Assembly: GCA_907165135.1 (NCBI GenBank)
Contig: OU015566.1
Coordinates: 10,168,001-10,232,000, forward strand
Direction of reading: 5' to 3'
Length of the DNA stretch: 64,000 nt
Source of the DNA: Oikopleura dioica
Taxonomy: Eukaryota > Animalia > Chordata
The notes under the pieces were generated by a model. That model ran no database searches, had not been told where the DNA came from, and saw only the letters and a program-made list of their open reading frames with translations. Position numbers and translations under genes: made by a program. Below, piece by piece: positions 12,820-18,328 of the stretch (the first letter of the stretch is position 1; each line of letters begins with the position of its first letter).

Positions 12820-15800
12820 ATGGGCTGGAAAAGTATAGCCTTATGGCTACATTTAGCGAACAGTTGGACCTTGACGACCGAGAAAATCAGCGAAAACGAA
12901 CTCTACGACCAGTAAGTTGATGAATTGGGAGGGGATGAGTCGGTTAGATTTACGATTAATCGGAAATGCGGTTTGATTCCTCGCGACATATAAAATGATA
13001 GTTACTTAGAATCCTGTTTCCGGGCCCGCCTTCCTTTCCGGGGAAATAGTTATAGAAAAACAGATGATCGATAAAATACGAATCGATCAGTGGTCCGTCA
13101 GCTTTCGGGGTAGGGCTCCTCACACCCGAGCATAGTTTTTGATGTGCGATTTTGTCACCCCGACCCCCTGCCATGTGCGGATGGATTTGCGGCTTTCTGA
13201 AGGTGATTTGGGCGGCGTTTTGGTGACGATTCTGATTGAAAATTTTGACCGAGACATTTTTCGGGGAGGAAACTCGAGCTTGATCGAGAAGTAGCTAGGT
13301 CAAGCGTGGCGAATTCAGTTCCAACCGGTTGCCCGCCCAGACCGAAGCAAGTTGAAGGCCAGTCATCCGGAACGACCTTCCAAGTGTTCGCTCTTTTCGT
13401 GATAGCGATCTTTAATCGCGCCCAATTATTTCAAAAAAGTATTAGCTACAGTGAATTCCTTTGTTGAGAGCTTTAATAGGGCTATCATTAGTTCCATTAT
13501 ATACTCGATGTCATTAGTTATTTATTGAAAAATATGTGATGTCGGAAAACGAAACGCGTAGGAAAAAAAGTTTGCTTGAAATCCCGGACAGGAAATAAAC
13601 AAAATCGACACTTCAAAGTACCCAAATATGTTGTTTACCGGGCGGCACTTCAACCCCAAAGTGGTTTGCCTTTCCTTTTTCCTAAATCATAGTTGCCGCG
13701 TTTTGCAATTCTAAATGCAATACAGCTTCATAACATCGCTTTTAGGGACTCTGGCGAATACATAAAAATCTTCTCGTCGAAAGGTGCTGATCAATACAAA
13801 ATTTCTGGAGTCGATTCTGGACCGTTCTATGTCGAATCAAGGAGAGATGAAACTTTGTGCAGTGACAATGTCTGCGGAATCCTGTGGCTCAAACGAGGAA
13901 TCAGGCTGGATAGAGAAGAGAAAGACTCGTATAAAGTAACATGTGAGTTAATTACGAGTTTATTGCTGTCTTTAGCGCTATAATTTGCTCCTGCAGGAGT
14001 AATTGCAAGACTTGATTTTTGCTTTTTCAAGTTTGAAAAAGGCAGGATTCTCGTCGCCTGTAAAATGATAAGCGTTTTTCTATTGCCCCTCACGCTTTTG
14101 ATGAATAAAAATCAATCGTCAAGCAAGCGATAACGCTTCAATTTAGTGACGGCATTAGACAGAAACGGCAACCAGGTAGAAGAGGACACCCTTACTATCG
14201 AAGTTCTTGATGAAAACGACAACGCTCCAATCTTTACCGCTGCATCTTCCAAACTTCAATGCGATGAAAGCACTCGAACTGGCGGCAGCTGTGGAAAAGT
14301 CGAAGCAATCGATGCTGACGCTGGAAACGCTGGCGAAGTCGAATACAGACTTCTGCCCAACCAGGAGACATGGAAAAGACGAGGCGGCGATCTGGAGACC
14401 AAGAGCATGGGAATCTTCAACATCAACAGTGAAACTGGTGAGATCACGCTGAACAATCCCGGCCCTTCTTATTGGGACGCTGAATCGTACGAATTCGTCG
14501 AGATCGAAGTAACTGCTCAGGAATGGCTCACAAATTGGCAACTTTGATCGATCGTTTGTGTTTTATATATCGTGACAAATTTAATGCAATCGGAGCGTGG
14601 CCATCGCCGCCCGTGGAACCCTTCATCCCCTTAATTTTGGATCTGAGATCGATGACACGATCTTATTTCCCAAGCTCTCTAAGCTGGGACAGTAGGCATA
14701 TTTTTAAGGCCGAGCTTAGACAGCTGTCCATGTCTTGTAATCCCCTACGCGGCCTGTTGTCCATTCTCACCTATGATTTGAAACTTCAGTTTACTCATTA
14801 CACTTAGTGAGCCAAATTAGGATGCACCTGGTAAATCAGCGCGAAATCCTCCAGTCACCGAAAAGATCACCATCTACATCAAAGACGTCAACGATAACCC
14901 TCCTCGAATCGTTGACTATGAAAAGGTCATCAAAGTCGGCGAGCTGAAACCAGTCGGTTCGGCGATTGGAACCGAAAATTTCGGCGGCAAGTACTCTTTC
15001 CGAGCTACTGATGCGGTAAGATATACAAGCAGTCGAATTTCAGGCTAACATAGAATTAAGGATGTCGACCCAGAAAACAACCGTGTTACCTTCCGGCTCA
15101 AGTCTGAATCTAGCCCCTTTGAGATTGTGAACAAAGATGATAACACAGCCTTTCTCCAAATCGCGAAACCCGGTCTCGACTTCGAAACCCAGAAGCGATG
15201 GACCATCGAGGTCGTCGCTGAGAACGAAGACGCTGCTGATCGGGGCAAAGATGCCAACTTTGCTATCACGATTGATGTTTTGGATGAAAACGAGCCCCCA
15301 ATTTGGGACGATACTAACATCATCTTCAAAGAAGGAGACACGAACGGAGCCAAATCGCTGCGAGACAACCCACGAGCGAAGGATTTAGACTTTGGTGGAA
15401 AATCTCCTGTTACTTATCGAATCACCAAGGACCCTCTTGGATTCTTCGATGTTGATCGCAACTCTGGGACTCTTACATATGTCCACGTAAGTTCAAAACA
15501 AAAGGGTCAGTTATAATACTTTGCTTCAGGCTGCTCCACTAGATCGAGAATGTGAATCGCCAGCTTGCAACTACAGGAATGGAACCTACGCTCTCGAGCT
15601 CGAAGCCTGCGATGATGAGAACCTCTGTGCCAAGAAAACCCACTACATCTTCATCGAAGACATCAACGACGAGGGACCACGAATCGAATACAACGAACCC
15701 GTCTGCAACATCCTCGATTCTGGCTCCTATGTCGTTATCAAGGGCTCCACCGACGTAAGTCTAACTACAGTATTAACGGAAACAAGATCGCACTACTTGA

Positions 15801-18328
15801 GTAGTTTCGATCGCGTCCAGTTTTATATTTCATCCAAGTTTGTTTTTTTATCTGGAAATCTGACTAGTAAATAGACCAATTTAAATCTTACAAAAACTCA
15901 CATTCTGCTTTTAGCTGAAAGCTATCGACCGTGATGACTGCAAAAAGGACCACTGTGGTCCTTTCAATATCAAAATCGTTGGCCAGTATAGCAAGAAGTT
16001 CGACTTGTACAAAAAGGACGATGACACTTATCAACTTCGGTAGGACACGTTCAGTGGTTTTCTTATAATAAATGTGGTTTACAGATACATTCCGCAAAAG
16101 TCCCTCCCTGTGGGAGAAACGATGCACATCCAAGTAAGCGGCACCGACCACGAAGGAAACAAGCAAGACTCCGTCATCACTCTCAACGTCTGCAGGTGAG
16201 CCTTTATACAAATTGGGTTAGTCCCTACTGGACAGGGGTGGACTTTCATTTATTTTTTGTTCGGCCATGCATAAATTTCTCCCGCCAGGTCCGTGGTGGT
16301 GTCGGTGTAGTAAGGGGGAAAGATCACCGAAGCGTGACTCAACGGGCGGTAATCTGCGGTCTTATTCACCACCACATGATGAGGCTTGTTTCGGAAATAG
16401 CACCCTTCGAAATGCGATTTAGATAGTTTTTTCTACCAACAAATAATTGAATTTTGCTCTTTCCATTGATTTAATTTCCGATAGCGTGTTAATTTTGGCA
16501 AGTAGCAATGCTTTCTTTCTGAATATCGCCACCCCATCGCGCTCAATAATTCATTTTATCACTGAGACTCGCTGAAACTTGCCAATTAGGATTATAGCTT
16601 GAGGAAATCAGGCCTAGAAGCTTATCCGGATAGACGCTTGGCGAAAGCAACAGGGTGTAAAATCGGTGAAATTTGAGTCCGCCTAAATTTAGAAAGCTAA
16701 TCTCATTGCCGTTGATTCCTTGACACATCTCTCCCTGCTGTTCTCAGGGGAGCTGACTGAGCTGGATCGCACCGATATCGGAGCTAATCTTTAGATCTGT
16801 CAACCTGTCGGGGGCATATGGCCCTTCTTGTCGATAGAAACCAACGTCTCTCCAAAAAAAATTCCCCATTTTTTCCGTATCAATTTTTAACCAGCTCAAT
16901 GTCGATAAATTCCATGGTTTATTATTACCAGTCACGGTTGAATATTTTCTGTAAGGATTTTAATAACAATTAGAGTCACAAGCTCTGACAGGGCTGTTTT
17001 CAATTCGCCACAAAAGGGCAACCCGCTGTGTTAGACAAATGAATCCCTGACAGTGATCCCATCGAGTTTATCTTGTCTTGGTGCGGAAAGGGGTTATAAT
17101 AAATTAAAATATTTCACCCCAATTTCTTTCAACAAAGGCGGAATGCCTCCCTTTTACCAAATCCGGATGAGAGCTCAAAGGCGTTTTCTCACGGGCGCAT
17201 AATTTGGGTGGCTTTGAGGAATGTCTATAGCTTTTCCTCTAAAAATATGAACGTTCTAATAAACTATCGTAGTTGTCAAAAATCGAGTGACTCGCCAACC
17301 GTGGCTTGCCCTGTCGTTGCGACGTCGGGCTTTCCATGGTGGTGGTTCTTTGTTATGGCCGCGCTTCTTATCATTTTGGGTAAAAACCAGTTTTGCTTTT
17401 TGCATTTTAGTTCCTTTACTAACCTCTCAATCGAGTGCTTGCTGTGATTCACTAACTAACCCTAATCCTAGATGCAAATCTGCTTTCGACGAAGCTGATT
17501 GTGGCTTTGACGAGGCCATCGCTGCAGGAGGAGGGGTTGTCGGCCCCTTCTTGGCCATTGTTATGGCAGTTATCGTCATTACCTGTGAGTGTGATTACTA
17601 AAATCTCTTAGCTTTTTACTAAACAAAGGCTTTGCATGATTTATTCTTTTACTTTGAAACCAGTTCTCCTTGTTCATTATAATTTTAGCAATCGTCGTTT
17701 TGCTCATCTTCATCAAAATGAGACGACAGCCTGAAAAGGCTGATGCTCTTATCGATGACGTCGATGATGAACGTGCCAACATCATGGCTTACCACCACGA
17801 AGGTGGTGGAGAAGAGGACCAGGTAAAGATTAATTACTTTAACTTTCCTTTGTTTCGCGACTTTTCATGTCTAACATCAAAAATTAGACCGATTATGATC
17901 CTGAATCCCTCGTTCGCGCCAAGCACCAGAAGAACTCGTTAATGAAGACTCGTCCCGTCAAACCCAGCCTCCTCGGCCCTGGAATTCCTCCAGAAGACAT
18001 TGGTCAATACATCAACGCGGTTAGTTGGCCCCTTGACCCGCATTTATTTGACACATGTTTTAGGCAAAGGGTCAAGCAGATGAAGATCCAAGTTCACCTC
18101 CATATGACTCGCTGCTCACCTTTGACTACGAAGGAGGCAACTCCATCTGTGGCGATTTATCCGAAATTGCTTCGAATGCTTCTGATTACGACGATGTAAG
18201 ATAGAATCACCAAAACTGATTCAAACTTTATTACTTAGGACATGAACCTGGACAACTGGAGCTCGCCGAAATTCCGCAAATTGGCAGATCTTTACGCCGG
18301 CCGTGAAAATGATGCCTACGATGGATGA
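12820..18328 (+). CDS. classical cadherin (5 EC domains, TM, p120- and beta-catenin-binding tail)
   Basis: Signal exon [16 protein letters not shown]; EC motifs [33 protein letters not shown]; cytoplasmic [34 protein letters not shown]; stop TGA at 18326-18328. Confidence 0.92.
14521..14820 (+). other. non-canonical GA-AG intron in cadherin EC2
   Basis: GCT CAG|GAATGG...TTAG|GAT GCA joins EIEVTAQ to [18 protein letters not shown] in frame. Confidence 0.8.
17273..17379 (+). other. cadherin alternative juxtamembrane/TM exon A
   Basis: AG|t..g|GT boundaries, 107 nt, phase 2 to phase 1. Encodes [35 protein letters not shown]. Confidence 0.8.
17472..17584 (+). other. cadherin alternative juxtamembrane/TM exon B
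   Basis: AG|a..t|GT boundaries, 113 nt, phase 2 to phase 1. Encodes [37 protein letters not shown]. Confidence 0.85.

Follow-up and report, generated by a model that had tools for sequence, protein, structure and literature searches.

A conserved pair of probably mutually exclusive transmembrane exons in a classical cadherin gene of Oikopleura dioica

In arthropods, the N-cadherin exons ME-18a and ME-18b form a long-conserved tandem pair, used in a mutually exclusive manner, that encodes the membrane-proximal cysteine-rich piece of the protein together with its transmembrane (TM) segment, and the resulting TM isoforms support graded homophilic adhesion in S2 cells (PMC2655722). Drosophila Dscam1, also a homophilic adhesion receptor, has two exclusive exons (17.1 and 17.2) for alternative TMs, and its exon 17 variants are cited in PMC2655722 as directing dendritic versus axonal targeting. 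Here, we describe two tandem exons, A and B, in g2721, the main classical cadherin gene of the planktonic tunicate Oikopleura dioica, a chordate; the gene lies within a 64,000-nucleotide (nt) stretch of the OKI2018_I69 assembly (chr1, OU015566.1, approximately positions 10,168,001–10,232,000; this whole stretch is ‘the window’, and coordinates are those of the window unless stated otherwise). Our reading, to which we give a probability of roughly 0.88, is that A and B are a conserved mutually exclusive exon pair of an Oikopleura classical cadherin, with exactly one of them present in each mRNA. A preliminary description of the window had proposed mutually exclusive TM exons in a chordate-type cadherin, and that proposal is now backed by selection on both exons, by paired mRNAs from a second species and by the two annotated models of g2711, a near-identical copy of the gene.

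The resemblance to arthropod N-cadherin ME-18 is close in design: a classical cadherin in which a tandem exclusive pair swaps a Cys-rich piece and the TM. However, N-cadherin is a type III cadherin with 16 extracellular cadherin (EC) repeats and EGF/LamG modules, its alternative exons encode 68–70 amino acids (aa) and it has two further ectodomain pairs (exons 7 and 13), whereas the Oikopleura gene encodes 5 ECs, has exons of 35 and 37 codons and is not orthologous. Because the gene is not an orthologue of DN-cadherin, the Oikopleura pair arose separately, and the switching of TM exons has thus evolved convergently in cadherins of arthropods and of a chordate. Dscam1 differs further in being an immunoglobulin-superfamily protein, and dendritic versus axonal targeting is a feature of Dscam1. 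Vertebrate C- and E-cadherin and cadherin-8 share with the Oikopleura protein the 5 ECs, the V-C-x-C..C motif, EGGGEEDQ and a beta-catenin-binding tail, but our searches turned up no report of mutually exclusive TM exons in these proteins. Full-text literature searches returned no description of the A/B pair or of exclusive TM exons in chordate classical cadherins, in agreement with the preliminary description, which knew of no chordate parallel; yet both isoforms already stand, without comment, among the ‘cds’ models of g2711. The pair is real, conserved and apparently unreported, with a function that we still infer. The exons concerned are as follows.

Constant exon 8: 16085–16195, + strand; end of EC5, closing with ..ITLNVC plus AG (two bases of the next codon).
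Alternative exon A: 17273–17379, + strand; 107 nt, borders ..cgtag/T and G/gtaaaa, with a weak GTAAAA donor.
Intron between A and B: 17380–17471, + strand; 92 nt; a branch site of the CTAAC type precedes exon B.
Alternative exon B: 17472–17584, + strand; 113 nt, borders ..cctag/A and T/gtgagt, with a strong GTGAGT donor.
Constant exon 10: 17689–17822, + strand; inner third of the TM helix (IVVLLIFI), stop-transfer KMRR and juxtamembrane domain to EGGGEEDQ.

The two alternative exons are bordered by AG/GT and are 3n+2 nt long. Each contributes one base, 35 (A) or 37 (B) codons and one further base, and exon 10 opens with the two bases that complete the codon left by either of them. When the splice combinations were translated, exon 8+A+10 and exon 8+B+10 both stayed open to EGGGEEDQ and beyond, while A and B together, or neither, gave a frameshift and an early stop. 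The peptide of each exon comprises x-C-(8–10 aa)-C, followed by a short stalk and then roughly the outer two-thirds of the TM helix: the exon A peptide has S-C-x10-C, a Pro/Ser/Thr stalk and a TM start of the Trp-belt kind, and the exon B peptide has R-C-x8-C, an acidic stalk and a G-x3-G-x3-A-x3-A ladder of small residues in its TM start. The preliminary description had placed the two exons in the same phase, had them both complete the Cys motif coming from exon 8 and begin the helix finished by the exon at 17689, and had argued that including both breaks the frame; we find each of these points to be correct. This layout and its agreement with the frame are far beyond chance. The pair likely originated by tandem duplication. 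The global alignment of A with B scored higher than 99.95% of shuffles, a figure inflated by the stalk-then-TM order common to the two, and one 10-mer, TTGTTATGGC, is found in both at an equivalent place.

We compared the locus with a 4.5-kb genomic contig (L002; GCA_977009715.1) from a diverged, Bergen-type lineage of O. dioica, the protein of which clusters with the Bergen O. dioica entries CBY21939/CBY43772. In L002, the two exons again measure exactly 107 and 113 nt; their order is unchanged, the AG/GT borders are kept and the donors are those of the window, GTAAAA after A and GTGAGT after B. The ratio of non-synonymous to synonymous divergence (dN/dS, Nei–Gojobori) came to 0.118 in exon A, to 0.171 in exon B and to 0.06 in the constant exon, at dS values of 0.7–1.8. 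Exon A differs from its L002 counterpart at 32 positions and by 0 indels; 17 changes are synonymous and 15 non-synonymous (dS ~1.8, with synonymous sites near saturation), and codon positions 1/2/3 hold 10/2/20 of the differences (chi-square p = 0.0005). The short introns that flank A and B are only 49–58% alignable between the lineages and are rich in gaps. These comparisons indicate that exons A and B are both under purifying selection between the two O. dioica lineages.

Exon A might instead be a decaying or unused duplicate, with B alone spliced in O. dioica and the A-containing model g2711.t1 a prediction artefact. The use of B in every inspectable O. dioica transcript contig, a Bergen annotation that has B only and the weaker donor at A would all fit this, but we consider it very unlikely. 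The length, splice sites and open frame of A have been kept at a dS of about 1 or more, with a dN/dS of 0.12 and a third-position bias, and because of these features we take exon A not to be an unused pseudo-exon; moreover, the neighbouring introns are full of indels and exon A has none, an A-like form occurs in mRNAs of a second species, and one metatranscriptome, X5, holds the share of sequence words expected of the exon without its introns (both described below).

The second species is an appendicularian with a cadherin about 41% identical to that of O. dioica, defined here as the 90% cluster around protein P0158 and represented, as mRNA only, in Logan RNA assemblies and JGI metatranscriptomes. 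Its cluster contains two kinds of otherwise identical protein. The mRNA contigs L012/L013 and L014–L016 are 97–100% identical per 60-nt window except for one 110/116-nt swap, which begins directly after ..GTTTGCAG, a point that matches O. dioica to the codon position; here, too, the two versions are both 3n+2 and differ by 6 nt in length. The A-like form reads C-x9-C-P..A-G-L-P-W-W-I-W (..AGLPWWIW..) and the B-like form C-x10-C..A-G-P-G-L-A-M-S-S-L-M-A-I-I-A-A (..AGPGLAMSSLMAIIAA..). The PWW peptide scored 65–81 against O. dioica A, compared with 19–20 against O. dioica B, and this match of the PWW form to A implies that the exon pair predates the split of these species. The preliminary description had called for a check that both exons are conserved in relatives, and this is borne out twice, by both exons in L002 and by both types in the second appendicularian.

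Mixed protein types could also arise if the A and B forms came from two gene copies, one form each, and not from alternative splicing. The O. dioica assembly does have 98.9%-identical copies of the gene, 39.5 kb apart, and the second species is known from its mRNA and not from its gene. Against this, A and B lie one after the other inside a single gene in both O. dioica copies and in the lone Bergen-type contig L002, both forms are annotated for g2711 by itself, and in the second species allelic substitutions elsewhere in the protein (R/K, D/E) are common to both forms, from which it follows that the two forms stem from one gene. A two-copy origin is therefore highly improbable, and we return to alternative use of A and B within a gene.

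Use of B in O. dioica was seen directly: an RNA contig from metatranscriptome X1 carries the joint 17584^17689 between exon B and exon 10, and a full-length Bergen-type mRNA contig (L009) carries the orthologous exon B. In the public annotation, the window gene g2721 has a B model, g2721.t1, and no A model, so that the A isoform is missing from g2721. By contrast, g2711 has two models that differ only at the A/B segment: t1 (CAG5106150.1, 779 aa) with the exon A peptide and t2 (CAG5106151.1, 781 aa) with exon B; exon A is identical, base for base, in g2711 and g2721. The OKI2018_I69 annotation was produced by AUGUSTUS, guided by hints on introns and exons from RNA-seq, and includes only ~1.09 isoforms per gene (PMC8008620). 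We also searched RNA runs for words of exon A plus both flanking intron pieces (17200–17471). Metatranscriptome X5 held 0.32 of the sampled words, where exon A without introns would be expected to give 77/242 = 0.318.

Several observations weigh against the exclusive-pair reading. The similarity between A and B is weak, and PMC8008620 does not state whether alternative AUGUSTUS models are strictly evidence-derived. All the assembled O. dioica transcripts that we found carry B, and two further relatives (P0429 and P0304) show B-like forms only; with B-like forms dominating the assembled contigs and alone in these relatives, B is the major isoform. Neither of the A junctions, 16195^17273 and 17379^17689, was seen in an O. 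dioica read or contig, with reads that were mapped at 95% and came from runs of the diverged lineage, which are uninformative at that likeness: runs X12–X14, labelled O. dioica, belong to the diverged Bergen-like lineage and covered only 15919–15982 and two intron blocks. Of the junctions that the preliminary description proposed to count, 17584^17689 was seen, in the X1 contig, and the two with A were not, within the scope of these runs. The evidence that A is used in O. dioica is indirect, consisting of the g2711.t1 annotation, the coincidence in the X5 word share and the selection on the exon.

The proteins made with A and with B would be identical in EC1–5 and in the catenin-binding tail, and would differ in the last Cys loop, the stalk and the outer two-thirds of the TM. 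In A-type peptides, a Cys is followed by Pro; then come G-[FL]-P-W-W and bulky residues, either aromatic or aliphatic, and small residues in register are lacking. B-type peptides, read from four taxa, have a period-4 ladder of small residues (G/A/S): G21-G25-A29-A33 in both O. dioica lineages, G20-A24-A28-A32 in P0429 and G22-S26-A30-A34 in P0158. This contrast of aromatic and small-residue TMs, drawn in the preliminary description, is real and is kept by type between species. The acidic stalk that had been named beside it for B is not conserved: whether a stalk is acidic or rich in Ser/Thr does not follow type from one species to another, and in the second appendicularian it is the A-like form that is acidic. 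Judging from what is generally known of GxxxG-type motifs and Trp belts, B helices may pack side by side and make contacts in cis, and A helices may act as bulky interfacial anchors. The preliminary description had suggested that the isoforms may differ in cis-dimerisation, localisation or shedding.

Both exons could be in use and the choice between them still have no functional consequence, as neutral noise in which each exon must nevertheless encode an anchor. There is some precedent in the Drosophila N-cadherin 18a and 18b isoforms, which show no difference in localisation (PMC2655722). However, P-W-W on one side and the small-residue ladder on the other have been kept across species with ~41% identical cadherins, and the weak donor of A and blocks of the preceding intron are conserved too; these features argue for a distinctness that is maintained and regulated, and we regard neutral choice as unlikely. 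The intron in question, with examples of its blocks, is given here.

Intron before A: 16196–17272, + strand; 1077 nt, the longest in the gene, with candidate splicing-control or other cis-regulatory elements.
Example conserved intron blocks (versus L002): 16333–16376, 16484–16502, 16519–16556, 16649–16673, 16773–16822, 17056–17077 and 17160–17177, + strand.

Pairwise alignment and an identity profile revealed many blocks of 12–50 nt in this intron that are identical or nearly so in the Bergen type, with a few mismatches at most. They are far better conserved than the synonymous sites of the flanking exons, and the other introns of the gene are unlike this one. RNA reads of the diverged lineage match 16606–16689 and 16774–16857 at 95% or more, a level that most exons do not reach. 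Rfam and tRNA scans of the long intron detected no known family and no tRNA. In a third species (L019, intron >950 nt, contig ending before its A/B exons), matches to the blocks were no better than those of shuffled controls.

Two conserved pairs of complementary blocks were found within the intron, 16621–16631 with 17161–17171 (11 bp) and 16904–16912 with 17064–17072 (9 bp); RNAalifold on the region gave conserved helices with almost no covariation. In addition, CUCACGG at 17188–17194 can pair over 7–8 bp with the exon B donor at 17583–17589, a pairing in which the Bergen type differs by one change that is compensatory and one that is one-sided, with two lineages only and hence no statistical support. 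Control of splicing through intronic pairing with the exon B donor is only a lead. Steric exclusion between the exons was considered and rejected as unlikely, since A and B are separated by 92 nt, double the length of the normal introns of this gene (43–45 nt); no device other than the frame is needed for mutual exclusion. We also rejected a third variant exon in the intron, raised by a ‘PGPWW’ open reading frame fragment at ~16290 (‘CCGTGGTGGTG’, P-W-W, at 16287–16301): the stretch looks like the PWW codons in exon A but is not conserved in the Bergen type, so that the likeness is probably due to chance.

We propose that each mRNA would take one of the two exons, as inclusion of both or neither would yield a truncated protein without anchor or tail. 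B, with its good branch site and GTGAGT donor, would be the default; A, the weak GTAAAA donor of which has been kept between lineages, would probably be included only when activated; and the long conserved intron ahead of A is the likely control region, with a small number of candidate elements for splicing control, all strongly conserved. Such a switch would tune lateral clustering or preference for membrane domains and leave adhesive specificity unchanged. The parts of this scheme that we infer are that O. dioica tissues regulate their use of A, that the intron blocks have a role and that the two helices differ in biophysical effect; the exon layout, the constraint set by the frame, purifying selection on both exons, use of B in two lineages and use of both types in a second species are shown by the data above.

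A wider and rather doubtful extension would be that this is an old switch, set by the near-invariant RNA or DNA elements of the 1.08-kb intron, including the U1-like CUCAC, that controls clustering or junction type from tissue to tissue. If so, a zipper-competent helix with a G/A ladder and a bulky Trp-belt helix might be deployed differently, for example, between embryonic blastomeres and house-secreting epithelium, and the gene would provide a natural, genetically simple test of what the cadherin TM contributes to adherens junctions. The role of the TM in cis-clustering of cadherins and in junction assembly is debated and has usually been probed with artificial mutants; here, two natural TM variants are carried on an otherwise identical protein, by a tiny gene of a tractable chordate. 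O. dioica has a life cycle of 4–5 days, and DNA interference (DNAi) and RNA interference (RNAi) are available in it. Knock-down of a maternal O. dioica ‘cadherin-6-like’ gene, which may or may not be g2721, loosens blastomeres (PMC5345011).

The assignment of g2721 to the chordate-type, 5-EC, catenin-binding classical cadherins follows from its Pfam content, its alignments with C- and E-cadherin and its nearest vertebrate relatives. Pfam matched only Cadherin (4 stretches) and the cytoplasmic domain, with no EGF/LamG module; the cytoplasmic tail matched PF01049 (CADH_Y-type_LIR; E = 5e-17). C-cadherin (1q55) gave a single continuous alignment of protein residues 82–776 with chain residues 218–878, the E-cadherin cytoplasmic domain (1i7w_B) matched over residues 636–777, and the juxtamembrane (p120-type) motif EGGGEEDQ is present. 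The nearest named relatives were vertebrate type I/II cadherins, namely cadherin-8 for the ectodomain and B-cadherin, cadherin-4 and cadherin-1 for the tail. A protein search with an EC exon as the query returned mainly giant cadherins and short fragments, and a homologue search with the open reading frame of the constant exon gave only mini-ORFs that derive from gDNA. The Oikopleura protein may differ from the vertebrate cadherins in lacking a recognisable prodomain and the N-terminal Trp2 motif: reading of the P0286 sequence by eye recognised neither a prodomain furin site (R-x-K-R) nor the strand-swap DW (Trp2) motif, and its N-terminus begins MGWKS.. and passes into EC1-like sequence after ~35 residues.

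The locus of the annotated protein CAG5106170.1 (g2721.t1; L017) matches the window base for base, and spliced mapping of this protein (P0157) on the window gave the following gene structure.

Classical cadherin gene g2721: 12820–18328, + strand; 13 coding exons.
Exons 1–4: 12820–12911, 13746–13942, 14147–14508 (or –14520) and 14821–15015, + strand.
Exons 5–8: 15061–15486, 15530–15754, 15915–16039 and 16085–16195, + strand.
Exon 9, which is A or B, and exons 10–13: 17689–17822, 17888–18019, 18064–18195 and 18239–18328, + strand.

The gene belongs to a block that also holds two p38-like kinases, a DLG-like MAGUK and the genes downstream of the cadherin. The whole block occurs twice, 39.5 kb apart and at 98.9% identity, with one copy at 1–25509 of the window (L017) and the other upstream (L018; chr1 10131257–10156764, containing g2711). 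This reflects either a recent segmental duplication in tandem or a haplotype that the assembly left uncollapsed. The two copies are annotated unequally, with two isoforms for g2711 and one for g2721.

Two marine-metagenome contigs from a close relative of O. dioica, L010 (1652–2212) and L011 (2–343 and 2978–3316), carry the second half of exon 10 and exons 11–12 after unrelated sequence, and in L011 exon 11 is found at both ends. They represent either a partial tandem duplicate of the 3′ end of the cadherin or an assembly wrap-around; as a partial 3′ copy they say nothing about A and B, and we set them aside as evidence on the pair.

The last exon (18239–18328) holds the true C-terminus, as a 43-nt GT..AG intron (18196–18238) removes an in-frame stop at 18202; an RNA contig carries the splice joint across this intron. 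For exon 3, the end is probably at 14520 (..EIEVTAQ), ahead of a non-canonical GA..AG intron (CAG/GAATGG) that is the same in L002. VTAQ is included in the Bergen-type mRNA contig and in the g2711 models, while g2721.t1 splices at the GT at 14509 and loses 4 residues; this exon 3 end in the g2721.t1 model is probably an annotation artefact.

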